DNA from: Hemiscyllium ocellatum | Lineage: Eukaryota | Assembly: GCF_020745735.1 (NCBI RefSeq) | Contig: NC_083435.1 | Coordinates: 46,004,498 to 46,068,497 of the forward strand | Length of the DNA: 64,000 nucleotides | Reading direction: 5' to 3' | Shown here: piece after piece, positions 9,301 through 63,300 of the stretch | Layout of the letters: each line of letters begins with the position of its first letter | How positions within the stretch are numbered: position 1 is the stretch's first letter | Program-made: the position numbers and the translations under genes | Notes under the pieces: generated by a model | What the model saw: only the letters and a program-made list of their open reading frames with translations | What the model was told of the DNA's origin: nothing | Databases searched by the model: none

Positions 9301-12300
9301 GGGATTATTTACAGGGCCTGTGTTTTGGGGTTTATTTACAAGGGGCCCTGTGTTTTAGGGTTTATTTACAAGGGGCCCTGCGTTTTAGGGATTATTTACA
9401 GGAGCTTTGCATTTTAGGGTTTATTTACGGGGAGCTCTGTGTTTTAGGGATTATATACAGGGGGCTTTGTGTTTTAGGGTTTATTTACACTGTGCCCTGT
9501 GTTTTAGGGTGTGTTAACAGGGATCCCTGTGTTTTAGGGTTTATTTACAGGGGGCTCTGTGTTTTCAGGTTTATTTAGTGTGCTCTGCATTTTAGGGATT
9601 ATTTACAGTGACCTCTGTGTTTTGTGATTTAGTTCCAGGCAGCTCTGTGTTTTCGGGTTGATTTACAGGGGTCTATGTGTTTTAATGTTTATTTACAGAG
9701 GGATGTATGTTTTAGGGTTTATTTACAGTGAGCTTTGCATTTTAGGGTTTGTTGACAGGGGGCTCTGTGTTTTAGGGTTTATTTACGGGGGGCTCTGTGT
9801 TTTTGGGTTTATTTGTAGGGGGCCCTGTGTTTTAGGGATTATTTACAGGGGGCTCTGTATTTTAGGGTTTATTTACAAGGGGTTCTGTGTTTTAGGGATT
9901 ATTTACAGGGGGCTCTGTATTTTAGGGTGTATTTTCATGAGGCCCTGTGTTTTCAGGTTTATGTACAGTGAGCTCTGCATTTTAGGGATTATTTACAGGA
10001 GGCTCTGTGTTTTTGGGTTGAATTACAGGGGGCTCTGTGTTTGAGGGATTATTTGCAGTGGGTTCTGTATTTTAGGGATTATTTATGGGGGCTGTGTGTT
10101 TTGGGGGTTATTGACAGGATGACCTGTGTTTTAGGGTGTATTTACAAGGGGCCCTGTGTTTTAGGATGTGTTTACAGGGATCCCTGTGTTTTAGGGTTTA
10201 TTTACAGGGGGCCTTGTGTTTTAGGGTTTATTTACAGGGGGCCCTGTGTTTTAGGGTTTATTTATAGGGGGCCATGTGTTTTAGGGTGTATTTACACTGT
10301 GCCCTTTTTTTTGGGGTTTATTTACACTGTGCCCTGTGTTTTAGGGTGTGTTTACAGGGATCCCTGTGTTTTAGGGTTTATTTACATGAGGCCCTGTGTT
10401 TTCAGGTTTATTTAGTGTGCTCTGCATTTTAGGGATTATTTACAGTGACCTCTGTTTTGTGATTTAGTTCCAGGCAGCTCTGTGTTTTCGGGTTGATTTA
10501 CAGGGGTCTGTGTGTTTTAATGTTTATTTACAGAGGGATGTATGTTTTAGGGTTTATTTACAGTGAGCTTTGCATTTTAGGGATTGTTGACAGAGGGCCC
10601 TGTGTTTTCAGGTTTATGTACAGTGAGCTCTGCATTTTCGGGATTATTTATAGGGGGCTCTGCATTTTAGAGTTTATTTGCAGGGAGTTCTGTGTTTCAC
10701 GGTTTATTTCGAGAGGGGCGGTGTGTTTTAGGGTTTATTTACAAGGGTCATTGTTTTAGGGTTTAGTTACAGGGGGCTCTGTATTTTCGGGATTATTTAC
10801 AGGGCCTGTGTTTTGGGGTTTATTTACAAGGGGCCCTGTGTTTTAGGGATTATTTGCAGTGGGTTCTGTATTTTAGGGATTATTTATGGGGGCTGTGTGT
10901 TTTGGGGGTTATTGACAGGACGACCTGTGTTTTAGGGATTATTTACAGTGTGCCCTGTGTTTTAGGGATTATTTACAGTGTGCCCTGTGTTTTAGGGGTT
11001 ATTTACAGGGGGCCCTGTGTTTTAGGGATTATTTACAGTGTGCCCTGTGTTTTAGGGATTATTTACATGAGGCCCTGTGTTTTCAGGTTTATGGACAGTG
11101 AGCTCTGCATTTTATTGATTATTTACAGGAGGCTCTGTGTTTTAGGGTTTATTTACGGGGGCCCTGTGTTTTAGGGTTTGTTTACAGGGGGCCCTGTGTT
11201 TTAGGGTTTGTTTACAGTGAGCATTGAATTTTAGGGATTATTTACAGGAGCTTTGCATTTTAGGGTGTATTTACACTGTGCCCTTTTTTGGGGGGTTTAT
11301 TTACACTGTGCCCTGTGTTTTAGGGTGTGTTTGCAGGGATCCCTGTGTTTTAGGGTTTATTTACATGAGGCCCTGTGTTTTCAGGATTATTTAGTGTGCT
11401 CTGCATTTTAGGAATTATTTACAGGGAGCTCTGTGTTTTGTGATTTAGTTCCAGGCAGCTCTGTGTTTTCGGGTTGATTTACAGGGGTCTGTGTGTGTTA
11501 ATGTTTATTTACAGAGGGATGTATGTTTTAGGGTTTATTTACAGTGAGCTTTGCATTTTAGGGTTTGTTGACAGGGGGCTCTGTGTTTTAGGGTTTAGTT
11601 ACCGGGGGCTCTGCACTTAGGGTGTATTTACAGGGGTCTGTGTGTGTTAATGTTTATTTACAGAGGGATGTATGTTTTAGGGTTTATTTACAGTGAGCTT
11701 TGCATTTTAGGGTTTGTTGACAGGGGGCTCTGTGTTTTAGGGTTTAGTTACCGGGGGCTCTGCACTTAGGGTGTATTTACAGGGGTCTGTGTGTGTTAAT
11801 GTTTATTTACAGAGGGATGTATGTTTTAGGGTTTATTTACAGTGAGCTTTGCATTTTAGGGTTTGTTGACAGGGGACTCTGTGTTTTAGGGTTTATTTAC
11901 AGGGGGCTCTGCATTTTAGAGTTTATTTGCAGGGAGTTCTGTGTTTCACAGTTTATTTCGAGAGGGGCTGTGTGTTTTAGGGTTTATTTACAAGGGTCAT
12001 TGTTTTAGGGTTTAGTTACAGGGGGCCCTGTATTTTCGGGATTATTTACAGGGGGCCCTGTGTTTTAGGGTTTATTTACGGGGGCCCTGTGTTTTAGGGT
12101 TTGTTTACAGGGGGCCCTGTGTTTTAGGGTTTGTTTACAGTGAGCATTGAATTTTAGGGATTATTTACAGGAGCTTTGCATTTTAGGGTGTATTTACACT
12201 GTGCCCTTTTTTGGGGGGTTTATTTACACTGTGCCCTGTGTTTTAGGGTGTGTTTACAGGGATCCCTGTGTTTTAGGGTTTATTTACATGAGGCCCTGTG

Positions 12301-13180
12301 TTTTCAGGATTATTTAGTGTGCTCTGCATTTTAGGAATTATTTACAGGGAGCTCTGTGTTTTGTGATTTAGTTCCAGGCAGCTCTGTGTTTTCGGGTTGA
12401 TTTACAGGGGTCTGTGTGTGTTAATGTTTATTTACAGAGGGATGTATGTTTTAGGGTTTATTTACAGTGAGCTTTGCATTTTAGGGTTTGTTGACAGGGG
12501 GCTCTGTGTTTTAGAGTTTAGTTACCGGGGGCTCTGCACTTAGGGTGTATTTACAGGGGTCTGTGTGTTTTAGGGTGTATTTACAGGGGGCTCTGTGTTT
12601 TCGGGGCGTATTTACAGTGAACTCTTAGGAATTATTTACAGGAGGCTCTGTATTTACAGGGAACTCTGCATTATAGGGATTATTTACAGGGGGTTCTGTG
12701 TTTTCGGGATTATTTATGGGTGCTGTGTGTTATTGGGTTATTTACAGGGGGCTCAGTGTTTTTGGGGTTATTTACAGTGGGTTCTGTATTTTAGGGATTA
12801 TTTATGGGGGCTGTGTGTTTTGGGGGTTATTGACAGGGATCCCTGTGTTTTAGGGTTTATTTACAGGGAGCTCTGCATTGTCGGGTTTATTTACCGGGTG
12901 CCCTGTGTTTTAGGGATTATTTACAAGTGGCATAATGTTTTTGGGTTTTGTTACAGGGGGTGCTGTGTTTTTGGATTTATTTGCAGGAGGCTGCATGTTT
13001 TAGGGTTTCTTTAGAGGAAGCTCTGTATTTTGGGGTTTATTTACAGGGAGTTTGTGTTTCACGGTTTATTTAGAGAGGGGCTGTGTGTTTTACGGTTTAT
13101 GTACAGGGAGCTCTGTGTTTTTGGGTGTATTCACCGTGGTCTCTGTGTTTGAATGTTAATCTGTAGGGGTCTGTGTGTTT
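3378..13180. repeat. 30-bp minisatellite array, ~325 units, in presumed intron 1 of the class I gene
   Basis: Consensus GGGTTTATTTACAGGGGGCCCTGTGTTTTA read directly in tandem over ~9.8 kb with many variant units. Confidence 0.98.
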
Positions 13181-13415
13181 ATTTCCCCCTGGTTTGGTGT
13201 GTTGTTGCCCTGTCTGTGCTGTGTACAGTGTAGTGTGTGTGACTGTGTGTGTGTGACTGTGTGGCGATGATGTTGAGTCTCTGAGCTGCAGCTCGGGGCT
13301 GATGCTGAGTGTGTCCCCTCAGCCCGGACTGGGGGCTCTCTCTGATGGTCCTTCCCCTGGCTGGGGTGTCTCTCCCTGGTCACAGTCTCTCTCTCTCTCT
13401 CTCTCTCAGTGTCAG

Positions 13416-13676
13416 TGTCTCACTCCCTGCGGTATTTTTCCTCCTGGATGAGCCCGATGCCGGGATTGCCGGAGTTTGTGCTGGTCGGTTATGTGGATGA
13501 GCAGGAGTTTGTTCACTATGACAGTGATCGGAAAAAGATGATCCCGCGGCAGCGCTGGATCGCGGAGCGTGAGGGAAAGGATTACTGGGATGGGCAGACA
13601 CAGATCCTGCGGGATGAGGAGCCGGTGGGAAAGGCCGACATCCAGACCATGATGGGGAGGACCAACCAGACCGGGG
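13416..13676 (+). CDS. UAA: MHC class I exon 2, alpha1 domain
   Basis: VSHSLRYF...PEFVLVGYVD..FVHYDSD..MIPRQRW...YWD.QTQ...RTNQTG, with Y7, Y59, R84 and the N86 glycosylation sequon NQT. (CT)n polypyrimidine tract, AG at 13408-09 and 13414-15, donor GTAAGT at 13677. Confidence 0.97.
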
Positions 13677-16600
13677 GTAAGTGACCGGGGGATCACCCCG
13701 GGGGGGCGGTGATTGGCTCTCTGTGGGTGATCCCTCCCTGTGATTGGCTCCCTCTCTCTGTGATCCACAGGGATCCACACTGTCCAGCTGATGTACGGCT
13801 GTGAGCTCCGGGAGGACGGCACCACCGGCGGGTTTATGCAGTTCGGCTGGGACGGCCGGGACTTGATCAGCTTCGACAAGGACAGCCAGGTGTGGGTGAC
13901 CCCCGTCAGCTGGGGGCAGATCACCAAAAATAAATGGGACAACACCCCGGGATTAAACCAACAGCGGAAGGGTTACCTGGAGGGAATCTGCATCGAGTGG
14001 CTGAAAAAATACCTGGAATACGGAAAGGAGCAACTGAGACCAGGTAATGGGATAGGGGGGGGGGGGGGGGGGGGGGATACGGGGAGAGAGAGAGAGAGGG
14101 GGGGATACGGGGAGAGAGAGAGAGAGGGGGGGATACGGGGAGAGAGGGGGGATACGGGGAGAGAGGGGGGATACGGGGAGAGAGNNNNNNNNNNNNNNNN
14201 NNNNNNNNNNNNNNNNNNNNNNNNNNNNNNNNNNNNNNNNNNNNNNNNNNNNNNNNNNNNNNNNNNNNNNNNNNNNNNACGGGGGAGAGAGAGAGGGGGT
14301 GATACGGGGAGAGAGGGGGGGATACGGGGAGAGAGGGGGGGGGATACGGGGAGAGAGGGGGGATACGGGGAGAGAGGGGGGATACGGGGAGAGAGAGAGA
14401 GAGAGAGGGGGGATACGGGGAGAGAGAGGGGAGGATACGGGGAGAGAGAGAGAGAGAGAGAGGGGGGATACGGGGGAGAGAGGGGGGATACGGGGAGAGA
14501 GGGGGGGGATACGGGGGGAGAGAGAGAGAGGGTGGGAATACGGGGAGGGGGTGTGATACGGGGTGGGAGAGAGAGAGAGAGTGTGGGGCATACGGGGGGT
14601 TGAGAGAGAGAGGGTGGGGCATACGGGGAGAGAGAGAGAGGGGGGGAATACGGGGAGAGAGAGAGAGGGGCATACGGGGAGAGAGGGGGGTATACGGGGA
14701 GAGAGAGAGAGGGTGGAAATACGGGGAGAGAGAGGGGGGGTGATACGGGGGTGGAGAGAGGGGGATATGGAGAGAGAGAGGGGGATACGGACGGAGAGGG
14801 AGAGGAGGATGAGGTGGGGGGATAGGGAGGGAGGGGGGATACTGGGGGGATAGGGATGCAGAGGGAGGGAGGGAGGATACGGGGAGGGAGAGGAGGATAG
14901 AGAGGGAGGGGGTTACGGGGAGGGAGAGGGGGATAGGGAGGGCGGGGGGATCCGGGGAGGGGGATGGGGGGAATACGGGGAGGGGGAGGGGATACGGGGA
15001 GAGGGATACAGGGAGGGAGAGGGGGATAGGAAGGGAGGGGGGATACGGGGAGGGAGATAGGGATAGGAAGAGAGGGATACGGAGAGGGAGGGAGAGGGGG
15101 GATACGGAGAGGGAGGGAGAGGGGGATACGGAGGGAGGGAGAGGGGGATACTGAGAGGGAGGGAGAGGGGGATACGGAGGGAGGGAGGGAGAGGGGGATA
15201 CGGAGGGAGGGAGAGGGGGATACGGAGGGAGGGAGAGGGGGATACTGAGAGGGAGGGAGGGAGAGGGGGATACGGAGGGAGGGAGGGAGAGGGGGATACG
15301 GAGGGAGGCAGGGAGGGAGAGGGGATACGGGGGGAGAGGGAGGGAGGGAGAGGGGGATACGGGGTGGGAGGGAGAGGGGAAAAGGAGGGAGGGGGGATAT
15401 GGAGGGAGGGAGAGGGGGAAAAGGGGAGGGAGGGAGAGGCGGAAACAGAGGGAGGGAGAGGGGGATACGGGGGGGAGAGGGAGGGAGGGAGAGGTGGAGA
15501 GGGAGGGAGAGGGAGGGAGAGGGGGATACGGAGAGGGAGGAAGAGGGACAGGTCGAGGCGTGGGATGAGGGAGATAGAGAGGCCGAGGCGGGGAGTGAGG
15601 GAGGGAGAGGGACAAGAGAGGGACAGGCCGAGGCTGGGAGGGAGGGAAGGAAGGAAGGAAGGAAAGGGACAGGCCGAGATGGGGAGGGTGAGGGAGAGGC
15701 CGATGCGGGGAGGGAGGGAGTGGGTGAGGGAGAGGGACAAGCCGAGGCAGGGCGCTGGGGAGAGAGGGAGAGGGAGAGGGACAGGCTGAGGCGGGGATGG
15801 AGGGAAGGAAAGGGACAGGCGGGGAGGGAGGGAGAGGGAGAGGCCGATGCGGGCTGGGTGGTAGACGGAGATCGACAGGTCGAGGTGCAGAGGGAGGGAG
15901 AGATTGAGGGGGAGGGACAGGCCGAGGTGGGAAAGGAGTGAGAGGGACAGGCCGAGGGAGGGAGGGAGGGAGGGCGAGGTAGAGGGACAGGCCGAGGCAG
16001 GGACGGAGAGAGGAAGAGGGAGAGAGGAACAGGCCGATGCGGGAGGGAGGAAGAGGGAAAGGGACAAGCTGAGGCAGGGAGGGAGAGGGACAGGCTGAGG
16101 GAGGGAAGGCGAGGTAGAGGGACAGGTCGAGGCGCGGAGGGGAGGCAGAGGGAGGGAGGGAGAGGAACAGGCCGAGGCAGGGAGAGGGACAGGCGGGGGA
16201 AGGCGTGAGAGGGACAAGTCTAGGCGTGGAGGGAGGGAAAGGGAGAGGCGAGGGCGGGTGAGGGAGAGATACAGGACGAGGCAGGTAGGGAGGAAGAGAG
16301 AGGGACAGGCCGAGGGTGGGAGGGTGGTAGAGGCAGATGGACAGATCGAGGCGGGGAGGGAGGGAGAGGGACAGGCCGAGGTGAGGAGGGAGGGGGAGGG
16401 GGAGGGACAGGCCGAGGGAGGGAGAGGGACAGGCTGAGGCTGGGAGGGAGGGAGAGGGTGAGGGAGAGGGACAGGCCGAGGGAGGGAGGGACTGGCCGAG
16501 GCGGGGAGGGAGTGAGAGGGTGAGGGAGAGGGACAGGCCAAGGGAGGGAGGGACTGGATGAGGCGGGGAGGGAGGGAAGGAAAGGGACAGGCCCGAGATG

Positions 16601-19372
16601 GGGAGGGAGAGGCCGATGCGGGCTGTGTGGTAGACGGAGATTGACAGATCGAGGTGCGGAGGGAGGGAGAGGGACAGGCCGAGGTAGGGAGTGAGGGAGG
16701 GAGAGGGTGAGGGAGAGGGACAGACCAAGGCGGGGAGGAGGGAGTTGGACAGGCTGAGGCTGGGAGGGAGGGAAGGAAAAGGACAGGCCCGAAATGGGGA
16801 CGGAGAGGGAGAGGCCGATGCGGGCTTGGTGGTAGACTGAGATTGACAGGTCGAGGTGCGGAGGGAGGGAGAGGGATAGGCCGAGGCGGGGAGGGAGGGA
16901 GTGGGTGAGGGAGAGGGATAAGCCGAGGCAGGGTGCTGGGGAGAGAGGGAGAGAGAGAGAGGGACAGGCCGAGGCTGGGACGGAGGGAAGGATAGGGACA
17001 GGCGGGGAGGGAGGGAGAGGGACATGTCGAGGCACGGAGTGAGGGAGAGGGAGAGGGACAGTCCCGAGATGGGGAGGAAGAGGGAGAGGGAGAGGCCGAT
17101 GCGGGCCGGGTGGTAGACGGAGATCGACAGGTCGAGGTGTAGAGGGAGGGGAGAGAGTGAGAGAGAGAGAGACAGGCCGAGACGGGGAGGGAGGGAGAGG
17201 GACAGGGTGAGGCAGGGACGGAGGGAGGAAGAGTGAGAGGGACAGGCCGAGGCGTGGAGGGATGGAAAGGCCGAGGCGGTGAGGGAGAGAGGAACAGGCC
17301 GAGGCGCAGAGGGAGAGGGACAGGCTGATGCGGGAGGGAGGGAGAGGGACAGGTGGGGAGGGCGTGAGAGGGACAAGTCTATATGCGGAGGGAGGGAAAG
17401 GGAGAGGCGAGGGCGGGTGAGGGAGAGATACAGGACGAGGCAGGTAGGGAGGAAGAGAGAGGGACAGGCCGAGGGTGGGAGGGTGGTAGAGGCAGATGGA
17501 CAGATCGAGGCGGGGAGGGAGGGAGAGGGTGAGGGAGAGGTACAGGCCGAGGGAGGGGGAGAGGGACAGGCCGAGGGAGGGAGGGACTGGACGAGGCGGA
17601 GAGGGAGAGGGACAGGCCGATGCGGGCTGAGTGGTAGACGGAGATCGACAGATCGAGGTGCGGAGGGAGGGAGAGAGTGAGGGAGAGGGACAGGCCGAGG
17701 GAGGGAGAGGGACAGGCCGAGGCGGGGAGGGAGGGACAGGCTGAGGGAGGGAGGGACTGGCCGAGGCGGGGAGGGAGGGAGTGGGTGAGGGAGAGGGACA
17801 AGCCGAGGCAGGGCGCTGGGGAGAGAGAGAGAGAGAGGGAGAGGGACAGGCTGAGGCTGGGAGGGATGGAAGGAAAGGGACAGGCGGGGAGGGAGGGAGA
17901 GGGACATGTCGAGGCGCGGAGGGAGAGGGAGTGGGAGAGAGAGACAGGCCGAGGCGGGAAAGGAGGGAGAGGGAGAGACAGGCCGAGACTGGGTCGGAGA
18001 GAGGGACAGGTCGAGGGAGGGAAGGCGAGGTAGAGGTACAGGACGAGGCAGGTAGGGAGGAAGAGAGAGGGACAGGCCGAGGGTAGGAGGGTGGTAGAGG
18101 CAGATGGACAGATCGAGGCGGGGAGGGAAGGAGAGAGAGAGGGACAGGCCAAGTCGGGGGGGTTGAGGGAGAGGGAGAGGGACAGGCCGAGGTGGGAAGG
18201 GAAGAGGAGAGGCCATGGTGTGGAGGGAGGGAGGGGGAGACGAACAGGTCGAAGTGGGGAGGGAGAGGGACAGGCCGAGGCGAGGAGAGTGTGAGGGACA
18301 GGCCGAGGCAGAGAGGGAGAGAGGGACAGGCCGAGGGAGGAAGAGGGAGAGGGACAGGCCAAGGCAGGGAGGGAGAGAGGGACAGGCCGAGGGAGGAAGA
18401 GGGAGAGGGACAGGCCAAGGCAGGGAGGGAAAGGGACAGGCTGAGGCAGGGAGGGAGGGAGAGGGAGGGGGACAGGCTGAGACGTGGAGGGAAGAGGAGA
18501 GGCCAAGGTGTGGAGGGAGGGAGGGGGGGACGAACAGGTCGAAGTGGGGGAGGGAGATGGACAAGCCGAGGCGTGGAGGGAGGGAGAGTGTGAGGGACAG
18601 GCCGAGGCCGGGAGGGAGGGAGGGGGAGAGGGACAGGCCGAGGCAATGGAGGGAGGGTGAGGGAGAAGGATAGATCAAGGGAGAGAGACAGGCGAGGTGG
18701 GGAGGGAGAGGGACTGGCCGAGGGAGGGAGGGCGAGGTAGAGGGTCAGGCCGAGGCGTGGAGGGATGGAAAGGCCCAGGCGGTGAGGGAATGAGGGACAG
18801 GCCGGGGCGCAGAGGGAGAGGGACAGGGTGAGGTGTGGAGGGAGGGAGAGATGGACAAGCCGAGGTGGGGAGGGAGGAAGAAGAAAAGGGACAGGCTGAG
18901 GCAGGAAGGGAGGGAGAAGGTGAGGGAGAGAGGCAGGCCGAGGCATGGATCTGGGAAGAGGGAGAGGGACAGGCTGAGGCAGGGAGGGAGGGAGGGAGGG
19001 AGAAGTAGAGTGACAGGCCTAGGCATGGAAAGAGGGAGAGTGACAGGCCGAGGGGGGAGATGGAGAGGGACAGATCGAGGCAGGGGAAGACGGAGAGGGA
19101 CAGGCCGAGGTGGGGAGGGAGGGATGGAGGGAGAGGGACAGGCCGAGGCGCGGAAGAAGAGTCAGACGGACAGGCCCAGGCAAGGAGGGAGGGAGAGGGA
19201 CAGGCTGAGGCAGGGAGGGAGAGGGACAGGCGGAGGCAGGGCGGGAGAGGGTGAGGGAGAGGGACAGGCGGAGAGAGGGAAAGGGAGAGGGACAGGCGGA
19301 GGCGGAGAGGGAGGGTGAGAGAGACGGACCGGCCGGGGAGACGAGGGTGGGCGAGGGAGAGGCTCAGGCCGG

Positions 19373-19416
<44 letters not shown>

Positions 19417-19820
19417 AGTCTGAGTGGGAAGGGAGATGGGTTTAGGCCGAGCGTTATGTGGTGGGAGAGAGAGTGGCGCTGAGGAGGAGAGGGTGAGGAG
19501 GGAGAGTGAGATCTGGTGGCAGGCCGAGTGAGGGGGGGTGTGAGAGGAGGGGGCTGGCTGATTGTTGGGAGAGATGGTGAGTGTGAGAGTGAGAGAGAGA
19601 AAGAAAGACAGAGAGATACAGGCCGGGGGTGTAGATGGCAGAGAGAGTACAGGGAGCCAGGCTGTGGTAGAGGGTGTTGGGAGGGACAGCGGGAATGAGG
19701 CCGATGTGTGGGACCTTGGCTGAGAGAGAGAGAGGTCGAGGGAGAGAAGGAAGGGACGGGGTGGGTGAGGAGGGAAGGTGGGTGGGGGTGAGGGGTTGAG
19801 AGTCTCTGTGTCCCTATCTA

Positions 19821-19870
<50 letters not shown>

Positions 19871-22800
19871 GTGAAACCCTCTGTAACCCTGACCCCTGTG
19901 AGGGAGAATAAAGATCTCTCCTGTATCGCCACTGGCTTCTACCCTCAGGCCATTGAGGTGAATCTGTTCCGGGGTGGAGTAAGGATTGATGACTCAGAAT
20001 CGACTGGAATCCGACCCAATCACGATGGATCCTACCAGATCCGCAAGTGGATGGAGTTTGACCCAAATTCCCAGGCCAAGTATTCCTGCGAGGTGGAACA
20101 CAGCGGATTGGGGCAGAAGCTGGTGGTGTTTTATGGTACGGATCTTCCTCAGTGTGTCAGGGACCAGTCCCTCTCTCCCCAGGAGGGGGATCAGTGCTGA
20201 GCACAGGGTGGGGATCCAGTCCCTCTCTCCCCAGGAGGGGGATCAGTGCTGAGCACAGGGTGGGGATCCAGTCCCTCTCTCCCCAGGAGGGGGATCAGTG
20301 CTGAGCACAGGGTGGGGATCCAGTCCCTCTCTCCCCAGGAGGGGGATCAGTGCTGAGCACAGGGTGGGGATCCAGTCCCTCTCTCCCCAGGAGGGTGATC
20401 GGTGCTGAAACAATATCCTGATCAGACTCTGGATATTGTGATGTATGGATTGTGTGACCTTCCATCTGTTGCGATGGGTTACCCTGGTAACAATGATGTT
20501 GGTGCTCAGTGGTTCGTTTTCAGATGCTTGATATTGCAGGTGAACTGAAAAGTCTTTATCCTGTTCCTTTTCTCTGGGGTTTCACACCCACTCTCTGTGC
20601 TGGAAGCCAGGGAGAGAGAGATGGAGTGACTGCCTTTCCTTTTACTTGCAGTGCATAGATGACAATTAGTTTTCATCACCGTGACTCTCACAGTACACAC
20701 CTTCACTCGCTGTCTGTCTATCTGTCTCTCTCTCACTCTTACTCTCTTTCTCACATACACACACTCTATCTCTCATTTGCTCTCTATTGCAATCGCTATC
20801 GATCGCGCTCTCGCTCTCGCACTCTCTCCCTTGATGTCTCCCTCCTTCTCTCAAACACACACACGGTGAAACAGGCTTTTCACCCTCTGTGTGTGTATAT
20901 GATTGAAAGGGAAATCCACAGCACCTATCTTCACATCCTGACTGTGTTTACACTCCCACTGTATACACACACTGAAATAACTCCCAGCAGAGGACCCTTC
21001 TGTCTCCCTCTGAGATTTCCTTCACTCCTGCTCGGAGGGTATTCCAGAGTTTCTGTCCAAACTCTCTGAGTCTCCATCTAAAGACATTTGACTGTGTCTT
21101 TTTTTCTACAAAGCGTACACTGGAATCAGTCTGTAAGTGATCTGGCATTTATTATCTGTTGTCATGACAGTTGGGTACAGCGTGCCCGGGATATTCTCGT
21201 GTTCTTGTTAATTGCTTCTTAAATCTCCCTGTGTTTCAGCCCCAGGAGGCTGCTACAGTTCCAGCCTTTAGAAACTTATGCAAATGAAGTTTAAAGCTAA
21301 TGGTAAACGTTGGTTCTGTTTGTAGTCAGGGAGCCTCCTGTGATTTGGGTGAAAGCTGTTGTGTGCATTGGTCACGCCTATTCTATATCTACAAGGATAG
21401 ATACAAAACCCGGAATCTCCTGTCACGATAATCCACAAAGGACTGAGATGCATACCCAACATTCAGTCATCAGAAATAGGACTGACAGTAGTGATAACTT
21501 TGGGAGACCCATCTATCCATAACCCCTGTGCACCTGCACAGTATTATTCATTGTGCGTGTACATCAGCATGAAAGGCTTTTACCGAAACGTCGATTCTCC
21601 TGCTCCTGGGATGCTGCCTGACCTGCTGCGCTTTTCCAGCACCACACTCTCGACTCTGATCTGCAGCATCTACAGTCCTCGCTTTCACAACAGTGGTATG
21701 GGGTGTCTGTGGGTTGTCTGTATCAATTATCCCCTGTCTCTCCACAGCACGTGGGAGAGTGTCATGGTAACCCATCTGAATACCTTTGCAAAAAATTCCA
21801 ATCTTTTCACTTTCCAACTTTGTCATGAGGTAACATTTGAAATCCCGAGCTCCAAGCCCGGCAGCTCTCTGACAGTGTCCTTGCAGCTCTCATCAAACCA
21901 TACTTGTATCTCTAGCTGTCAGCTTACACTAGTGTGGGGGTTTCCTCTGGAACAAATGGGGAGGCAGGACCCCAAAGGCCAACATTATCCAATTCTGGGC
22001 AGAGACCTGGTTTACTCGATTATGTTTGTTCCTGGCACTTTGAGTGTTCCACACTGGGGCCTGATGTGCATTGCTCTGTGTTGCAGAGTTAGAGAGTTTA
22101 CAGCTGCATGAAGCTCCTGACACTGTTGTTCCAGCTTGTCTATTTACACTGGGGCTGTCTCCTGCTCCCCCATGGTCCTCCTCTCACTCAGATCATCTCT
22201 TTCAAATTGTGACTGGAACTGTCCCATACGGATCAGGGTTTTTCCTGTATTTTAGGGTCCTGTTGTTTAATTACAAGTTTTAACTTTTCCAATTCATACT
22301 AGTGATTTCTAACCACTCCCACAGCGATCTAATCTCAGCTGGTCAGCTGCAGAACTCTCCTCGGCTACACGCTGCTACTGGTGCTGTGGTTCCCTCAGCT
22401 GCCTTCTTTCCGAACTTATTCTGTGTTTCTTGCCATATGTCTTGGGTCATGGAACCCAAGGGTGCAGGGTCAGTCTGGGTGTGACCAAAATCTGTGTATT
22501 TAGGCCATTTTTCAAAAAAGGTATGGTCTGAGCGTGTCCTCCCATGTCGGACGAGGGGATATTGTCCCATTTTGCTTATAAGCATATTATTTCCGGTGTC
22601 TCTTCCATGTTATTACATTCTGGGAAGTGGCTGTAGTTAAGGTAAAGCTTTAGCTAGATTCTTATTACAGCTTCTCAAAGTCTTAGACGTTTGGAACTAG
22701 AGCATGGTGATCCCTTCAAACAGTTCGCAGAGATAGGTCTTTAACCCCTTCTCGTGGCCTGACTGTAGAGTTCCCCACAGTCACATCACTATTCCAGCTA

Positions 22801-23901: not shown

Positions 23902-25902
23902 ACTCTCATTACTGAGTCCCTGCCTCTTGCTATGATGATCTGTCCGAAGGCCTCAGATGATTTGAGAGAGGGGACTGGAGGTGAACCCTGGTTTTAGACC
24001 TTTTAGATAGTTTCAAACTGTGAAGGGTGTCTCCCTGATTGACCAGAACTATAGAACATTCCAGAAAACTGTCAGCCATTTGGATGGCTTGTTACTGATG
24101 GTGTCTTTGTGTAACTGGACTCTGTACCTTTCTGTCTGGGCCCTCTGTTTGGAGCTTAAATTGTTTGGGACAAGTCTGTCCAGGAAAACGTTTGCCTTTT
24201 ACGTTACCCTGATATCATTAGCACCAGGTCACTGTGTCTGCACTGTGCCTGGTGTGTGGCTTTGGGATTTTAAGCTTTTTCTGGGCCTATGTACCCAGCA
24301 TCCCTTGGTGTTTGGCCAAGTTAACAATCTGTCTGTGTGTCAGCAGCCAGGGGGCTGCGAGTGTGTCCCTGCCCAGTGTATGCTCTGTTGGATGGCTGAT
24401 GTCTGACTGTCTCTTGTTGGATAATTCTCTTCCAGAACCAAAGAGCAGCTCCATCATCCTGATTATAATCGGTATTGTCGTTGCTCTCCTGCTAATTGTT
24501 GCTGTCATCGCTGGGGTTGTCTGGTACAAGAAGAAAGGTAGGAGTCTGGGTGTGAATGGGCAGGTACATGCTGTGGGAAGGGAGTCTGGGTGTGAATGGG
24601 GAGGTACATGCTGTGGGAAGGGAGTCTGGGTGAGAACGGGCAGGTACATGCTGTGGGAAGGGGGTCTGGGTGAGAACGGGCAGGTACATGCTGTGGGAAG
24701 GGGGTCTGGGTGAGAATGGGCAGGTACATGCTGTGGGAAGGGAGTCTGGGTGTGAATGGGCAGGTACATGCTGTGGGAAGGGAGTCTGGGTGTGAATGGG
24801 GAGGTACGTGCTGTGGGAAGGGGGTCTGGATGCAGAAGTGCGGGGATAGACTGGGGAATTGTGTTGGAGAATGAAGAGGGTCAGGTGAGTAGGAATGGGC
24901 TGGTCCTGTGGGTGGGGAGGTGTCAATGTCAGCATCCAGTGGGAGGAGAGCGGGGAGTGTGATACTTGGGAACTTCCAGTAACGGGAGAATTTGAGGATG
25001 TGAAATCTGGAATGTGACAGTGTAGTGTCAGAGCAGGAGGACAGATTGGAGACTGTGGAGCTTTGTTCACACAGACACGGGGAGTGTCGGGAATAAATAG
25101 GACCGATACACTAATTACTGTGGAGGGTAGGAGACGGTGGGCAGGGCTGCTCCATCAACTAGACCCTGAGAGGGTGGGGGCTGGGGTGGGGGTTGGGTGG
25201 GAGCAGGGGTGGAGGGGGTTCGGGGTGGGGTTGGGTGGGGGCGGTGGTGGAGGGTGTAAGGGAAGGGTTGGGAGTTGGGTGGGAGCAGTGGTGGAGGGGA
25301 TGGGGGGCAGTGTTGCTATCTGGTCCTCTCTTACCCCTCGGTGCTGAGCTCTCTGTAGGAGCTGCTCCCGGGGGAGATGGGAGGTGACAGTCTCTCCCTC
25401 CCAGGTCTCTCGGCCTGACTGTGGGGGTGTGGTCACTAACTGAGCTTTCCTTGTTTTTCCAGCAGGCCAGAAGGCAGACTACAAACCAGCGAAGAGTAAG
25501 TTTACCCCAATTACTGTCTGTCTGTCAAGTGGTGAAGCAGGCAANNNNNNNNNNNNNNNNNNNNNNNNNNNNNNNNNNNNNNNNNNNNNNNNNNNNNNNN
25601 NNNNNNNNNNNNNNNNNNNNNNNNNNNNNNNNNNNNNNNNNNNNNNNNNNNNNNNNNNNNNNNNNNNNNNNNNNNNNNNNNAGACCGTCTTCATTTCTGA
25701 CTGACATCTGTTGTCTCCATGAATATGTCAGGCTGCATCACCACCCCCCCCCTCTCCTTATTTCACATTCCCCTCCCCTCCACTCCACTCCACTCCCCTG
25801 CCTGTGTCCCCCAATGGTAAACATTATTTTGAAATGTGTTCTTTTGCTTTAACAGGTTCTGATAGAGGGGAGTCCTCCTCAAACTCCTCTGCCAATGCCT
25901 AG
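13416..25902 (+). CDS. UAA: MHC class I heavy chain, classical UAA-like; join(13416..13676,13771..14043,19872..20135,24436..24537,25466..25495,25856..25902); leader exon not in window
   Basis: Six exons, all with phase-1 GT-AG junctions, total 977 nt; with 1 nt from the missing exon 1 this gives 325 aa plus TAG. Domain order is alpha1, alpha2, alpha3 (IgC1), TM, cytoplasmic. The lineage name rests on recalled similarity to nurse shark UAA, not on a search. Confidence 0.95.
13771..14043 (+). CDS. UAA: MHC class I exon 3, alpha2 domain
   Basis: GIHTVQLMYGCEL...FGWDGRDLISFDK...ITKNKWD...GYLEGICIEWLKKYL: C101/C164, T143, K146, W147, Y159, Y171. Acceptor CACAG at 13766-70, donor GTAATG at 14044. 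Confidence 0.98.
14050..19420. repeat. purine-rich (G/A) compound tandem array filling intron 3
   Basis: Sub-array of GGGGGATACGG(GA)n units (~14050-15540), then GAGGGACAGGCCGAGG-type units (~15540-19370), then (GA)n. A 22-G run at 14055-14076 and an N gap at 14185-14278. Confidence 0.95.
19872..20135 (+). CDS. UAA: MHC class I exon 4, alpha3 IgC1 domain
   Basis: VKPSVTL...LSCIATGFYPQAIEVNL...RPNHDGSYQ...KYSCEVEHSGL: C1-set motifs. (CT)n tract and TAG acceptor at 19869-71, donor GTACGG at 20136. Confidence 0.98.
20165..20407. repeat. 52-bp minisatellite, ~4.7 copies
   Basis: CAGTCCCTCTCTCCCCAGGAGGGGGATCAGTGCTGAGCACAGGGTGGGGATC starting at 20165, 20217, 20269, 20321 and 20373. Confidence 0.97.
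21565..21670 (+). mobile_element. Penelope-like element terminal fragment with degenerate hammerhead core
   Basis: ...ATGAAAGGCTTTTACCGAAACGTCGATTCTCCTGCTCC...ATGCTGCCTGACCTGCTG.., the same short family as the copies at 34.2, 35.7, 37.0, 37.7 and 41.2 kb. Confidence 0.7.
24436..24537 (+). CDS. UAA: MHC class I exon 5, connecting peptide and transmembrane
   Basis: EPKSSSIILIIIGIVVALLLIVAVIAGVVWYKKK: hydrophobic run plus basic stop-transfer. Acceptor TTCCAG at 24430-35, donor GTAGGA at 24538, phase 1. Confidence 0.95.
24541..24830. repeat. 40-bp minisatellite, ~7 copies, starting at the exon 5 donor
   Basis: GGAGTCTGGGTGTGAATGGGCAGGTACATGCTGTGGGAAG with period 40 from 24541 to 24821. Confidence 0.97.
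25466..25495 (+). CDS. UAA: MHC class I exon 6, cytoplasmic (GQKADYKPAK)
   Basis: Pyrimidine tract then CAGCAG acceptor (25460-65), donor GTAAGT at 25496. Conserved cytoplasmic Tyr in a YxxA context. Keeps frame between exons 5 and 7. Confidence 0.9.
25545..25681. other. assembly gap (137 N) in intron 6; other gaps at 14185-14278 and 45436-45849
   Basis: N runs in the sequence. Confidence 1.
25856..25902 (+). CDS. UAA: MHC class I exon 7, cytoplasmic end (SSDRGESSSNSSANA*)
   Basis: Acceptor TTTGCTTTAACAG at 25843-55. Ser-rich tail typical of class I. TAG at 25900-02, then AG|GTAGGA donor at 25905. Confidence 0.9.
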
Positions 25903-30655: not shown

Positions 30656-31110
30656 ATTGGAAAGATATGGAAGCTTTGGAAAGGATTCAGAGGAGATTTA
30701 CCAGGATGTTGCCTGGTATGGAGGGAAGGTCTTATGTGGAAAGGCTGAGGGACTTGAGGCTGTTTTCCTTAGAGAGAAAAAGGTTAAGAGGTGACTTAAT
30801 CGAGACGTATAAGATAATCAGAGGGTTAGATAGGGTAGGCAGTGAGAGCCTGTTTCCTCGGATGGTGATGGCCAGCATGAGGGGACATAGCTTTAAATTG
30901 AGGTGTAATAGATACAGGACAGATGTCAGAGGTAGTTTCTTTACTCAGAGAGTAGTAAGGGCATGGAATGCACTGCCTGCAACAGAAGTAGATCACTTTT
31001 AAAGGCATTTAAATGGTCATTGGATAAACATATAAATGAAAATGGAATAGTGTAGGTTGGATGGGCTTTAGATTGGTTCCACAGTTTGGCACAACATCGA
31101 GGGCTGAAGG
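30655..31110 (+). mobile_element. CR1 LINE 3' fragment
   Basis: ORF 30667-31002 (ALERIQRRFTRMLPG...RGHSFKL...FFTQRVV.AWNALP). Confidence 0.92.
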
Positions 31111-51389: not shown

Positions 51390-52370
51390 TCTATGGTTTT
51401 GGCATTATTTATACGGGGTTCTGTGTTGTAGGGTTTATTTCCAAGGGGCCCTGTGTTTTAGGGTTTATTTACCGGGTGCCCTGTGTTTTAGGGATTATTT
51501 ACAGGGGCCCTGTGTTTTAGGGTGTATTTACAAGGGGCCCTGTGTTTTAGGGTTTATTTACAGGGGCCCTGTGTTTTAGGGTGTATTTACAAGGGGCCCT
51601 GTGTTTTAGGGTTTATTTACCGGGTGCCCTGTGTTTTAGGGATTATTTACAGGGGCCCTGTGTTTTAGGGTTTATTTACAGGGGGCCCTGTGTTTTAGGG
51701 TTTATTTACAAGGGGCCCTGTGTTTTAGGGTTTATTTACAGGGGGCTCTGTGTTTTAGGGTTTATTTACAGGGGGTCCTGTGTTTTAGGGATTATTTACA
51801 GGGGGCCCTGTGTTTTAGGGTTTATTTACAAGGGGCCCTGTGTTTTAGGGTTTATTTACAGGGGGTCCTGTGTTTTAGGGATTATTTACAGGGGGCCATG
51901 TGTTTTAGGGATTATTTACAGGGGGCCCTGTGTTTTAGGGTTTATTTACAGGGGGCTCTGTGTTTTAGGGTTTATTTACAGGGGGCTCTGTGTTTTAGGG
52001 TTTATTTACAGGGGGCCCTGTGTTTTAGGGTTTATTTACAGGGAGCTCTGTGTTTTAGGGTTTATTTACAAGGGGCAGTGTGTTTCAGTGTTCATTTACA
52101 GGGGTTCATCACCGGGAGATGTGTGGTTTAGGTTTCATTTACAGGGACCTTTGAGTTTTCAGGTTCATTTACAGGGGGCAGTGTGTTTCTGTGTGTTATG
52201 GTTTATTTACAGGGATCCCTGTGTTTTAGGGTTTATTTACAGGGGGATGTGTGGTTTAGGCTTCATTACAGGGACCTCTGAGTTTTCAGGTTTAGTTCCA
52301 GGGGTCAGTGTGTTTCAGTGTTGATTTACAGGAGTTTCTGTGTTTTAGGGTTTATTTACGGGTCCTGTGT
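51390..52370. repeat. second array of the 30-bp minisatellite, ~32 units
   Basis: Same consensus GGGTTTATTTACAGGGGGCCCTGTGTTTTA, same orientation as 3378-13180, and more homogeneous. Confidence 0.97.
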
Positions 52371-52415
52371 TGTATCTGGCTGATTAAAATGACTATATTC
52401 TGCCTTCTCCTGCAG

Positions 52416-52662
52416 CTTCTCACTAATCTGTGGAAATATTGAGTTCTGTGCCTGTGCGTCTGCTCCTGCCAGAGTGTGTGGTGGAGCTGATGTTTAATGG
52501 TATGATACAGGTGAACGATGACAAGAACATGAAGGAGCTGTGGCAGGAGGGGTTTGAGGCCAGGGGTCCTAATTTCTGGGAGTGAGGGACCCAGAGCCTG
52601 TAAGGCTGGTGGCACTGTGAGGGTAAGTATCCAGTTCACCATGTGTCGCACTGTCCAGGCAG
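52416..52662 (+). pseudogene. degenerate MHC class I alpha1 exon
   Basis: Acceptor TGCCTTCTCCTGCAG (52401-15). Phase-1 reading ASH*...LLPECVV...QVNDDKNMKEL...GPNFWE*GTQSL*GW..EGK, then after a frameshift IQFTMCRTVQA. Aligns to exon 2 of the intact gene (SH, LPE.V, V..D, FW/YW..TQ.L, GK, IQ..M.RT.Q). Stops at 52424, 52583 and 52601. Confidence 0.72.
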
Positions 52663-52764
52663 ATAGTGCGGGGGGCATGCTCCGACACAATTGACGACAT
52701 GGGCCCTGTGGAGAAGTTATGTTACAAATTTAACAATCAGTCTTTTAAATAGGTCTCGAAGTCT

Positions 52765-55700
52765 CTCTGTGTAATATACTATTTACATTTTCCTGTAACT
52801 CCCGAAATCGCTGACAATGTTTAATGTATTATTTACATTATCGTGTAATTCCCAAAATTGCTGGCTTTGTTTAATACATTATTTACATTATCCTGCAAAT
52901 CCCGAAATTGTTGAGTCTGTTTAATATATTATTTAAATTTTCCTGTAGCTTCCGAAATTGCTGACTCTGTTTAATATATTATTTACATTATCCTGTAACT
53001 CCCGACATCGCTGACTCTGTTTCATATAATATAAACCTTAATCTGTCACTCCCGAAATTACTGACTCTTTTTAATATATTATTAACATTATCCTGAAACT
53101 CCCAAAATCGCTGACTCTCTTTAAGACATTATTTACATTATCGTATAACTCCTGCTATCGCTGACTCTGTTTAATACATTTTTTACATTATCTTCTCTCC
53201 CGAAATCGCTGACTCTGTTTAATATATCATTTACATTATCCTGAAACTCCTGGAATCGCTGACTCCCTTTAATACATTTTTTTTTACATTATCGTATATC
53301 TCCTGATCTCGCTGACACTGTTTAGTGGATTATTTACATTATCTTGTCTCCCGACATCGCTGACTCTGTGTAATATAATACAAACATTAATCCGTAACTG
53401 CCAAAATTACTGACTCTTTTTAATATATTATTTAAATTACCCTGAAACTCCCGAAATCGCTGACTATCTTCAATACATTATTTACATTATTGTATAACTC
53501 CTGGCATCACTAACTCTGATTTATATATTATTTACATTATCCTGCAACTCCCGAAATTCCTGACTCTTTTTAATAGATTATTTACATTATCCTGTAACTG
53601 CTGAAAACTCTGACTCTGTTTAATATATTATTTAAATTATCCTGTGTCTCCTGAAATCTCTCACTCTGTTTAATATATTATTTACATTATCCTCTATCTA
53701 CCGAAATTGCTGACCTGGTTTAATATATTACTTACATTATCTTGTACATCCTGAATTCGCTGACACTGTATAATATATTATTCACACTATCCTGCAATTC
53801 TCGAAATTGCGCACTCTGTTTAATATATTATTCACATTATCCGGTAACTACTTAAATCTCTGACTCTGCTTCATATATTATTTGCATTTTCCTGTGTCTC
53901 CTGAAATCTCTGATTCTGTTCAATATATTATTTACATTATCCTATAACTCCCAAAACCGCTGACTCTGTTTAATAGATTATTTATCTCGTCATGTAACTG
54001 CTGAAATTGCTGACTATCTTTAATACATTATTTACATTATCCTGTAACTCCCAGAATCGCTGACTCTGTTTAATATATTATTTACATTATCTTGTTACTC
54101 CTGCACACTATCCTGCAATTCTCGAAATTGCTCACTCTGTTTAATATCTTATTCACATTATCCTGAAATTCCTGAAATCGCTGACTCTGTTTAACATATT
54201 ATTTACTTTATCCTGTAACTCTAGAAATTACTGACTCTGTGTAATATATTATTTACATTATCCTGTAGCTTCTGGAATCGCCGACTCTGTTTAATATAAT
54301 ATTTACATCATCCTGAAACTCCCAAAATCGCTGACTCTGTTTAATATATTATTTACATGATCCTGAAACTCCCAAAATCGCTGACTCTGTTTAATATATT
54401 ATTTACATCATCCTGTAACTCCTGAAGTCGTTGACTCTGTTTAATATAATATAAACATTAATCTGTAACTCCCGAAATTACTGACTCTTTTTAAAATATT
54501 GTTTAAATTGACCTGAAACTCCCGAAATCGCTGACTCTCTGTAAGACATTATTTACATTATTGTAGAACTTCTGGCATCACTGACTCTGTTTAATACATT
54601 ATTCACATTACCTTGTCTCCCGAAATCGCTACCTCTGTTTAATATACTATTTACATCATCCTGTAATCGCTGACTGTTTAATATATTATTTACATTATCC
54701 TGTAACTCCTGAAATAGCTGACTCTGTTTAATATAATACAAACATTACTCTAACTCCCGAAATTACTGACCTTTTTAATATATTATTTAAATTATCCTAA
54801 AACTCCCGAAATCGTTGATTCTGATTAATATGTTATTTACATTATCCACTATCTCCCACAAAATTGCTGACCTTGTTTAATATATTATTTACATTATCTT
54901 GTAACTCCCGAAATTACTGACTCTGTTTAAAATATTATGTAAATTATCCTGTAACTCCCGGAATCGCTGTCTCTGTTTAATAAATTATTTACATTATCCT
55001 CTATCTACCGAAATCGCTGACACTGTTTAATATATTATTTAAATTATCCTGTGACTCCTGAAATCTCTCACTCTGTTTAATATATTGTTGACATTAACCT
55101 CTATCTCCCGAAATTGCCGACCTTGTTTAATATATTATTTACATTATCTTGTAACTCCTGAAATCGCAGACTCACTTTAATACATTTTTTACATTATCGT
55201 ATAACTCTTGACCTCGCTGACTCTGTTTAATATATTATTTACATTATCCCGAAACTCCCGAAATTGCTGACTCTGGTTAATACATTATTTATATTGTCAT
55301 GAAACTGCTGAAAACTCTGACCCTGTTTCATATATACTTCACATTATCCTGTGACTCCTGAAATCTCAATATCTGTTTAATATATTATTTAAATTATCCT
55401 GTAACTCCCGAAATTACTGACTCTGTTTCATGTATTATTATCGGTATCCTATAACTCCTGGAATCGCTGACTCTCTTTAATTCAATATTTACATAATCGT
55501 ATAACTCCCGAAATCGCTGACTCTGATTAATATATTATTTGTATTCTCCTGTAACTCTAGAAATTACTGACTCTGTTTAATATATTATTTAAATTATCCT
55601 GTAGCTTCGGGAATCGCTGACTCTGTTTAATATATTATTTATATTATCCTGAAACTCCCAAAATCGCTGACTCTGTTTAATATATTATTTACATTATCTT

Positions 55701-56370
55701 GTAACTCCTGAAATCGCTGACTCTCTTTAATACATTTTTTACATTATCGTATAACTCCTGGAATCGCTGACTCTGTTTAGTAGATTATATGCATTATCTT
55801 GTCTCCCGAAATCGCTGACTCTTTTTAATATATTATTTAAATTATCCTGAAACTCCCTATATCACTGATTCTATTGAATATATTATTTTCATGATCCCGT
55901 AATTTCTGAAATCGCTGACCCTGTTTAATATATTATTTACATTATCGTGTAACTCCCGAAATCGTTGATTCTTTTTAAGATATGATTTACATGATCCTGT
56001 AACTCCCGAAATGGCTGACTCTCTGTTTAATATATTATTTAAATTATCCTGTAGCTTCTGGAATCGCTGACTCGGTTTATATATTATTCACATTATCCTC
56101 TAACTCCCGAAATTGCTGACCTTGTTTAATATATTATTTACATCATCCTGTAACTCCTGAAATCGCTGGCCCTGTTTAACATATTATTTAAATTATCCTA
56201 CAGCTCTCGAAATCGCTGACACTGTTTGGTATACTATTTACATTATCATGTAACTCCTGAAATCTCTGACTCTGCTTAATATATTATTTCCATTATCCTG
56301 CAACTTCTTAAATTGTTGAATATAGTATTCACGTTATCCTGTCTCCCCCGAAATCGCTAACTCTGTTTAA
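52765..56370. repeat. AT-rich 50-bp satellite, ~72 units
   Basis: TGACTCTGTTTAATATATTATTTACATTATCCTGTAACTCCCGAAATCGC with period 50 (e.g. 54311 versus 54361). Confidence 0.97.
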
Positions 56371-60359: not shown

Positions 60360-63300
60360 CCATATGTTGTTCAAGCTGTTAGGACCTATTAAACCCTTCA
60401 ACCAATAGATTATAAATGAAAGAATCCCGTGGCCGAATTGTTAAATCACTACAGACTTAGGTTGGTACTGATATAAAGTATTCCTCTGCTCCCTGTCCAT
60501 TCATGAATCTATCTAGATACATCTTAAATGCTGCTATCATGCCCGCCTCTGCTACTTCTGCGGGCACCCACCACCCTCTGCATATCCTTTTCCATGCATA
60601 TGGCCCCTAAACTTTTCCCATCTTATCTTGAAGTCATGATCCCTCATAATTGAATCTCTCACTCTGGGAAAACGTTTCTTGCTTTCCACCTCTCATGATT
60701 TTTTTAGACCTCAATCAGGTCCCCCCTCAACCTCTGTCTTTCTCTTGTAAATAATCCTAAACACTCAACCCCTCTTCATAGCTACTGCACTCCATATCAC
60801 GCAACATCCTGGTGAACCTCCTCTGCACCCACACCTTTTTTGTAATGTGGCGACCAGAACTGTATGCAGTATTCTAAATGTGGCAAAACCAAATTCTTAT
60901 ACAACAGTAACATGACCTGCCAACTCTTGTACTCAGTATCCCATCAGATGAAGGAAGGCATGCCGTATGCCCTCTTGACCACTCTACTGACCTGCATTGC
61001 CACCTTCAGGGTACAATGGACCTGAATACCCAGATCACTTTCCCCAGGATATTGCCATTTACCGTATAGTTCGCTCTTGAACTGAATCTTCCAAAATGCA
61101 TCACCTCACATTTGCCCGGATTGAGCTCCATCTACTATCCCTCTGTCTATCTCTCCAATATATCTATATTCTGCTGCATTCTCTAACAGTCCCCTTCCCT
61201 ATCTGCTACCTCACTAATCTTAGTGTCATCTGCAAGCTTGCTCATTAGACCACTTACACCTTCCTCCAGATCATGCATGTATATCACAAACAACAGTGGT
61301 CCCAGCACAGATCCTTGTGGAGCACCAGTTCTCCATTTTGAGAAATTCCCTTCCACTACTACTCTGTCTCCTGCTGCCCAACCAGTTCTCTGTCCATCTA
61401 GCTGTACACTCTGGACCCATGCGACTTCATTTTCTCCATCAGCCTACCATGGGGAACCTTATTAAATATCTTACTGAAGTCAATGATGACATCTACAGCT
61501 CTTCCCTCATCAATCAATTGTGTCACTTCCTCAATGAATTCTATTAGCTTTGTAGGACGTGACCTTCCTTCCACAAAACCATATTGTCTGTCACTGATAA
61601 TCCCATTTTCTCCCAAATGGGAAGAGATCCTGTCCCTCAGTATCTTCTCCAGCAGCTTCCCTACCACAGATGTCAGGCTCACCAGTTTATAATTACCTGC
61701 ATTATCCCTTCTCTCCTTCTTAAACAAGGGACAGCATTAGCAATTTTCCAGTCCTCCAGCACCTCAACCGTGTTCAAGGATGCTGCAAAGATATCTTTTA
61801 AGGCCCAGCTTCTCTCAGTAACCTGGGATAGGACGCTTCTGGACATGGAGACTTGTCGACCTTAATGCTTTTTAGAATATCCAACATTTCATCCCTTCAG
61901 ATGCTCACCTGACCTAGAATAATCAAACATCTATCTCTAACCTCACCATCCATCATGTGCCGCTCCTTGGTGAATACCAATGCAAATTACTCATTAAGAA
62001 TCTCACCCATTGTCTCTGACTCCACACGTAACTTTCCTCCGTTGTGCTTGAGGGGGCAAATCTTTCTCTAGTTACCCTCTTTCTCCTTGTACATGAATAA
62101 AATGCTTTGGGATTTTCCTTAACACTGTTTGCTAAAGATATATAATGACCGCTTTTAGCCTTCTTAATTCCTTGATTCAGATTAGTCTTACATTCCTGAT
62201 ATTCTTCCAAAGCTTTGTCTGTTTTCAATCGCCTAGACGTTATGTATGCTTCCTTTTTCCTCTTAGCTAGTCTCACAATTTCACCTGTCATCCATGGTTC
62301 CCTAATTCTGCCATTTCTATACCTCATTTTCACAGGGACAGATCTCTCCGGAACTCTAATCAACCTCTCTTTAAAGCCTCCCACATATCAAATGTGGTTT
62401 ACCTTCAAATAGCTGCTCCCAATCCACATTCCCCAGCTCCTGCCGAATATTGGTATGGTTGACCATACCCCAATTTAGCAGTCTTCCTTGAGGACCACTC
62501 TCATCCATGAATATTCTAAAACTTTTGGAATTGTGGTCACTATTCCCAAAGTAATCCTCTACTGAAACTTCAACCACTTAGCTGGGCTCATTCCCCAACA
62601 CCAGGTCGGGGATGGCCCTTACCCGAGTTGGACTATTTACATATTTTGCATATGTTCATCTAAACACTTCTGAAATATCTTAATATTCGCTACCTTTGCC
62701 ACCCTTTCACGCAGTGAGCTCCAGATTCCCACCACAGAAACATAGTTTCCCAAATCCCCTCTAAAACACCTGCTTCTTACCTTAAGTCTGTATTCCTTGG
62801 TTTTTGACCCCTTTATTCAGGTGAAATGTTTCTCCCTATCAACCCTGTCCATGCCTCCCAGAACTTTGTAACATCAATCACCTTCTCTGCTTGAAGGAAA
62901 ACAACCCCAGCCAGTCTAAACTCTCTTCATTGCTCCAACCCAGGCAAAATCCTGGTCAATCACCTCGACACTTCCTTTAAGACAATCACTTCCTTCCGAG
63001 AGTGGACTGACCACAACTGCACACAATACAATCATAGAGATGTGCAGGACAGAGACAGAAGCTTTGGTCCAAATTCCAGCTGTGGGCTAGCTATAGCTAG
63101 AACATTGAACATAGAGCACAAAACATAGAACAGTGCAGCACAGTACTGGCTTTTTGGCCCACAGTGTTACGCCAACCATTTATCTTAATCTAAATCAATT
63201 TAACCTACACACGCCAACTTATTGCCATCTATGTGCTTGTCCAGCATTGCTTAAATGTCCCTAATATCTCTGACTGTACTACCACCGCTGGCAGTGCATT

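Follow-up and report, generated by a model that had tools for sequence, protein, structure and literature searches.

The window analysed here, a stretch of 64,000 nucleotides from the genome of the epaulette shark Hemiscyllium ocellatum, carries an intact classical MHC class I gene on its plus strand (Table 1). The five exons of this gene that lie in the window match the H. ocellatum RefSeq protein P0183 at 100% identity throughout, and the Pfam families MHC_I and C1-set match the gene strongly. No part of the window encodes the leader peptide of P0183, so that exon 1 lies upstream of the window; intron 1 consequently includes a LINE fragment (11-1821, plus strand) and, downstream of that fragment, a 9.8-kb minisatellite of 30-bp units. 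Further LINE fragments of the reverse-transcriptase type were observed at 30667-31002 and 41889-42194 on the plus strand and at 61398-62384 on the minus strand. Purine-rich minisatellites of the GGGAGGGAGAG type, with an assembly gap among them (14185-14278), make up the ~5.8 kb of intron 3 (14100-19800). Immediately after exon 4 and after the transmembrane exon come shorter tandem repeats, of a 52-bp unit (20160-20408) and a 40-bp unit (24541-24829), respectively.

A second stretch of class I appearance lies 39 kb downstream of this gene, in a unique island of 400 bp enclosed by two satellites. A sequence-only reading of the window had taken it for a decayed alpha1 exon, and the elements on which that reading was built were all recovered from the sequence: an acceptor, a translation broken by three stops, a frameshift at 52628 and an internal GTAAGT (52623-28). 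In the frame 52415+3n the stretch reads ASH-stop-SVEIL...NFWE-stop-GTQSL-stop-GWWHCEGK, and past the frameshift it continues from 52629 as IQFTMCRTVQA. The motifs and spacings said to be common with exon 2 of the intact gene (H to PE, G..F/YW...TQ.L, GK and IQ..M.RT.Q) hold as well. However, calling the alignment almost gapless was an overstatement, as fitting the window copy to alpha1 in a profile alignment takes a gap of 5 residues ahead of the Trp, an insertion of 2 residues and some smaller shifts.

Table 1. Class I exons, putative relic exon with its lesions and splice sites, and 30-bp and 50-bp satellites in the window. B, related species.
Feature	Position	Strand	Details
30-bp satellite array, intron 1 of intact gene	3382-13150	+	9.8 kb; ends 260 bp upstream of exon 2
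Exon 2 (alpha1), intact classical class I gene	13410-13676	+	267 nt; Pfam MHC_I E = 4e-23; comparison exon
Exon 3 (alpha2), intact gene	~13770-14045	+	
Exon 4 (alpha3), intact gene	~19871-20134	+	
Transmembrane exon, intact gene	~24435-24536	+	
Cytoplasmic exon, intact gene	25462-25497	+	
30-bp minisatellite	51405-52359	+	ends 56 bp upstream of the relic
Pyrimidine tract and CAG, phase-1 acceptor	52398-52415	+	present in H. ocellatum, absent in B
Putative relic alpha1 (exon 2-type) pseudo-exon	52416-52665	+	250 nt; from translation and frameshift-aware profile alignment
In-frame stop TAA, at the Ser position of S-H-S	52424-52426	+	common to B
Site of 17 additional bases in B (V-P-P-E-G + 2 nt)	52540-52541	+	
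In-frame stop TGA	52583-52585	+	common to B
In-frame stop TAA	52601-52603	+	stretch deleted in B
+1 frameshift, one surplus base ahead of the I-Q-F-T-M-C-R-T tail	52628	+	same frame change required in B
Relic donor GTGCGG (GTGTGG in B)	52666-52671	+	homologous in place and phase to the donor of the intact gene
50-bp satellite	52765-56305	+	3.5 kb; in the expected place of intron 2 and exon 3

Taken from the H. ocellatum genome alone, the evidence that this putative relic derives from an alpha1 exon is weak. Searches of the window with the intact exons by tblastn and blastn gave nothing significant at the relic, at either the protein or the DNA level, Pfam MHC_I did not match its 52-residue stop-free piece, the only piece submitted, at E values up to 10 (the intact exon scores 82 bits), and the ESM Atlas feature search returned no usable match to it. 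The relic is the best alpha1 match outside the intact gene in all six frames of the window, be it by HMMER, by both frameshift-aware profiles or by a DNA scan, in which GA-rich repeats nearly equal its score. With a pan-vertebrate alpha1 profile of 169 domains from 150 representative class I proteins, six-frame HMMER gives it 5.9-7.6 bits and covers only the W...YW..TQ...IQ..M part; the score by HMMER alone varies between 5.9 and 10.7 bits with the way in which the frames are joined. Frameshift-aware alignment to the whole pan-vertebrate profile reaches 20.3 bits, the best value in the window, and is matched by 18% of 200 dinucleotide-shuffled 64-kb decoys (window-wide p = 0.18). Composition-matched shuffles of the island itself never equalled the score of the relic (0/4000), and aligned globally at the DNA level the relic and intact exon 2 are 57-58% identical (z = 6.7-7.5). 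Of the two outcomes that the sequence-only reading had named as speaking against it, one was therefore obtained, in that Pfam gives no match, but not the other, as the alignments to alpha1 are clearly better than those of shuffled sequence. Separately, the next-best plus-strand score of the alpha1 and alpha2 profiles (16.1 each) falls at 45170-45185, beside a gap at 45436-45849, and lies in the noise range.

Read on their own, the lack of a Pfam match, the frequency with which shuffled windows equal the pan-vertebrate score, the fairly high score of the minus strand of the island and the absence of partner exons from the window would all fit an ordinary non-coding island between satellites whose translation resembles alpha1 by chance. 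Against this stands the result obtained with a second profile, built from 78 named cartilaginous-fish alpha1 domains only, which assigns 25.7 bits to the H. ocellatum relic, a score equalled by 9 of 800 shuffled 64-kb decoys (window-wide p ~0.011). The relic also matches cartilaginous-fish sequences clearly better than those of other vertebrates, with mean values of 12.9 vs 6.3 in H. ocellatum and 13.7 vs 5.7 in a related species, B, a comparison whose direction is clear although its nominal p-values are inflated by the relatedness of the sequences to each other. This preference for cartilaginous-fish alpha1 counts against a chance resemblance.

Species B has an orthologous island of ~91% identity, represented by sequences from three studies and rebuilt here from the listed differences relative to H. 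ocellatum. The 30-bp and 50-bp satellites flank the island in this species too, the former as loose ends. The relic of B scores 30.3 bits with the cartilaginous-fish profile (0/800 decoys, ~0.0015 by Gumbel fit), and with the pan-vertebrate profile it reaches 22.3, against 20.3 in H. ocellatum and 9.2 +/- 5.6 after random mutation of the H. ocellatum copy to the same degree (P = 0.016). Taken singly, the differences between the two species improve or worsen the alpha1 match about equally often. A better match in B combined with differences in both directions is what independent decay from a better-matching ancestor predicts, and a chance match does not predict it. With the pan-vertebrate profile, a statistic based on the paired mean of the two species gave p ~0.10; we replaced it by a mosaic statistic, in which either species' base is allowed at each differing site as an approximation of the ancestor, because this models decay from a shared ancestor better. 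The mosaic alignment scores 39.3. Decoy pairs brought to an equal divergence gave null maxima of 30.3 +/- 2.6, and 3 of 960 such pairs reach the observed value (0.006 by Gumbel fit), corresponding to a window-wide p of ~0.003-0.006. With the cartilaginous-fish profile and the mosaic test, homology to alpha1, as distinct from function, thus holds over the whole search space. As several profiles and statistics were tried, the smallest of these p-values deserve a few-fold discount, after which the overall case for the relic is still strong.

The 17 surplus bases of B fall between a Leu and a Trp codon, precisely at the 5-residue gap of the window copy. The segment reads V-P-P-E-G where the family profile has V-P-K-Q, and B thereby shows D-D-S-N-M-K-E-L-V-P against Y-D-S-N-T-K-K-A-V-P of the profile. 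Once it is included, the stretch from the acceptor to the conserved Trp aligns without gaps to intact exon 2, counted from an inner AG at 13416, and the exon attains 267 nt, the length of its intact counterpart. When it is restored, the HMMER score climbs from 10.7 to 14.8 bits, and the match, previously confined to profile positions 49-86, covers 19-86. Random 17-nt insertions perform equally well in ~6% of trials. That the match is kept and improved in B, with a segment that fills the alignment gap, is a further point against chance. The absence of the segment from H. ocellatum is probably due to a microhomology (GCTG) deletion, the direction of this and the other indels being deduced without an outgroup. 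If the 17 nt are ancestral, the alpha1-like parts can be read only with two compensating frameshifts.

On the minus strand, whose score was mentioned above (17.3 with the alpha1 profile), an antisense ORF of 112 residues spans the whole relic (52352-52690). A Pfam search of this ORF gave no match, and since the -1 and +17 indels interrupt it in B, it was treated as a product of chance.

The comparison between species also clarifies the boundaries of the putative exon. The tail of B, R-T-D-Q-T-D-G/GTGTGG, is homologous to that of the intact gene, R-T-N-Q-T-G-G/GTAAGT, so that the true donor is the GT at 52666-67, three bases past the mutated donor that the sequence-only reading had placed at 52663, and the exon ends at 52665 rather than at 52662. 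This end is in phase 1, like the ..Q-T-G-G/GT of the intact gene. The relic alignment thus begins at a phase-1 acceptor and ends at a phase-1 donor, and the structure is that of one phase 1-1 exon, with a CAG acceptor ending at 52415 in H. ocellatum only and a GT donor at 52666-67 in both species.

The position of the relic adds independent weight for homology. The 30-bp satellite occurs twice in the window, as an array of 9.8 kb within intron 1 of the intact gene and as one of 1 kb just upstream of the relic; the two consensus sequences agree at 29/30 bases and have the same orientation. The consensus is TGTTTTAGGGTTTATTTACAGGGGGCTCTG, and each unit carries the acceptor-like motifs TTTACAG and TTTTAG. 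We estimate the chance that a random top match would land behind this satellite at ~0.002-0.02. The minisatellite of intron 1 either predates the duplication or has spread between the copies.

Taken together, the cartilaginous-fish profile, the mosaic test and the ortholog in B support the proposal of a decayed class I alpha1 pseudo-exon. We therefore regard 52416-52665 as the decayed alpha1 exon (exon 2) of a second MHC class I gene downstream of the classical one, a reading to which we assign a probability of roughly 0.87, and we consider an accidental resemblance of non-coding DNA to alpha1 very unlikely.

The relic has no present function and is neither a coding nor a spliced exon. The two species differ at ~9.5% of sites inside the exon and at 9.7% of sites in the adjoining 100 bp, and the indels between them in the island (-12, -1, +17 and -15) are not multiples of three; equal divergence inside and outside, together with indels of such lengths, indicates the absence of constraint on the exon. 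A second B haplotype (52426-52540) carries further single-base indels and a few substitutions, and two haplotypes of B that differ in this way fit unconstrained DNA. The stops at 52424 and 52583 and the frameshift at 52628 are common to both species, which dates the death of the exon to before their split. Of the attributes of a functional class I gene, an open reading frame and purifying selection are lacking, and no sign of expression was found in the RNA runs searched.

A live cryptic or alternative exon, spliced into some transcript through the acceptor at 52415, is scarcely credible. The acceptor is strong in H. ocellatum, and donor-like sites follow downstream (GTAAGT at 52623 and GT at 52666), but three stops and a frameshift interrupt the frame and none of the RNA runs searched carries the stretch. 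Moreover, the exon is under no constraint, and both the acceptor and the GTAAGT are destroyed in B. There, 12 nt (CTTCTCCTGCAG, between two CTTCTC repeats) are missing and the AG of the acceptor is gone, by parsimony a loss in B, while deletions totalling 15 nt remove the stretch with the stop TAA 52601-03.

As the sequence-only reading had stated, partner exons of the relic for alpha2 and alpha3 are lacking. Run over the whole window, frameshift-aware alpha2 and alpha3 profiles find the intact gene only, with nothing above noise in the 52.7-64 kb part, and no copy of a leader exon or promoter was found upstream of the second 30-bp satellite. The leader, alpha2, alpha3 and transmembrane exons that make up a complete class I locus are consequently missing from the relic. 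A weak DNA match between the end of the relic and the start of intact exon 3 (19/23 bases, E = 0.57), at first weighed as a hint of a processed copy, was dropped as insignificant.

The relic is not a recent copy of the intact gene, as had been supposed from the sequence, since its DNA identity to intact exon 2 is ~58% vs ~91% between the islands of the two species. In terms of distance, the relic and the intact exon are separated by ~0.6 substitutions per site or more, compared with ~0.1 between species, which suggests that the relic copy is several times older than the species split. As an alternative to such great age, the gene may have diverged while working and have died later.

Whether this divergence reflects a separate ancestry was addressed by single-sequence matches and by a quick maximum-likelihood tree, in neither of which UBA, UDA, UEA, UFA and UGA figure under their own names. 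The best single-sequence matches are the classical UAA alpha1 domains of Triakis scyllium (P0004, P0174), followed by other UAA-like elasmobranch sequences. In the tree the relic sits on a branch of ~3 changes per column within an elasmobranch polytomy, with Triakis UAA nearest by path. Best matches to UAA and a long branch in a polytomy mean that long neutral decay explains the divergence as well as a separate lineage would. The further suggestion of the sequence-only reading, that the relic might represent a different or undescribed shark class I lineage, is thus unsupported. For a remnant of such a lineage, as opposed to a decayed copy of UAA/UBA type, speak the ~58% DNA identity to the intact exon and a distance that we estimate at about six times that between species, a divergence that, at shark rates, neutral decay alone would hardly produce in less than hundreds of millions of years. 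Nevertheless, the closest matches are to classical UAA, and the tree provides no grouping apart from known sequences, so that we hold a separate lineage to be unlikely.

A decayed exon 2 of a second class I gene could have arisen as follows. A second class I gene would once have followed the classical, TAP-linked one of the epaulette shark on its downstream side, the old duplication having carried, we infer, the end of intron 1 with the 30-bp minisatellite as well as exon 2. The exon was already dead in the common ancestor of H. ocellatum and B, as the two stops and the frameshift that they have in common show, and neutral drift has followed in both lineages, with 17 nt probably lost in H. ocellatum and the acceptor and 15 nt probably lost in B. 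The other exons would have been lost or overwritten, and the 3.5-kb satellite of 50-bp units would now occupy the place of exon 3.

A more far-reaching version sees in the relic all that remains of a once-functional second class I locus, which the hemiscylliid ancestor would have had within its compact, TAP-linked class Ia region and which would have belonged to a lineage without any living or described member. We judge this decidedly improbable; if it were true, the hemiscylliid group would have come secondarily to the 'single MHC-Ia gene' state of elasmobranchs.

Among known systems, the elasmobranch UAA exon 2 (that of Triakis scyllium UAA and of the P0183 gene) is likewise a phase 1-1 exon, of ~260-270 nt. 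The relic retains in the same order and spacing its S-H-S, L-P-E-x-V, D-S-(D/N)-x-K-x-x-(I/V)-P and W, followed by G-x-x-(Y/F)-W-x-x-x-T-Q-x-L, G-K and I-Q-x-x-M-x-R-T-(N/D)-Q-T-x-G and then GT, and it has the same 30-bp satellite upstream as the intact Hemiscyllium gene. In contrast to UAA, it carries two to three stops and one to three frameshifts at a residue identity of only ~25-30%, and lacks leader, alpha2, alpha3 and transmembrane exons, constraint between species and RNA.

Gene birth and death is a familiar feature of MHC regions, in which a dead class I fragment next to a classical gene is to be expected. Like the class I pseudogenes and fragments produced by birth-and-death turnover, the relic is partial, inactivated and located beside a functional TAP-linked class Ia gene; unlike typical annotated class I pseudogenes, it has one exon left and is far more decayed, and its detection takes both a lineage-matched profile and a second species. 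Elasmobranchs are reported to possess a single MHC-Ia gene tightly linked to tap1/2 and psmb8/9, and a species-variable number of 'MHC-Ia-like' genes near MHC-Ia (PMC10751288). The nonclassical shark class I lineages UBA, UDA, UEA, UFA and UGA (PMC12562908) are MHC-linked paralogues of old origin, as is the relic, but nothing ties it to any of them. Very probably, then, the relic is ordinary gene-family debris of birth-and-death turnover, and nothing about it points to a novel type of class I gene.

By itself the relic is of little importance, although it records a past duplication in the compact, single-gene class Ia region of a shark. The point of method may matter more: a generic profile and one genome could not tell the relic from chance, and it became clear only after a lineage-matched profile and a second species were brought in. 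Finally, the island constitutes a neutral marker common to two species at ~9% divergence, which could help to calibrate rates in the region.
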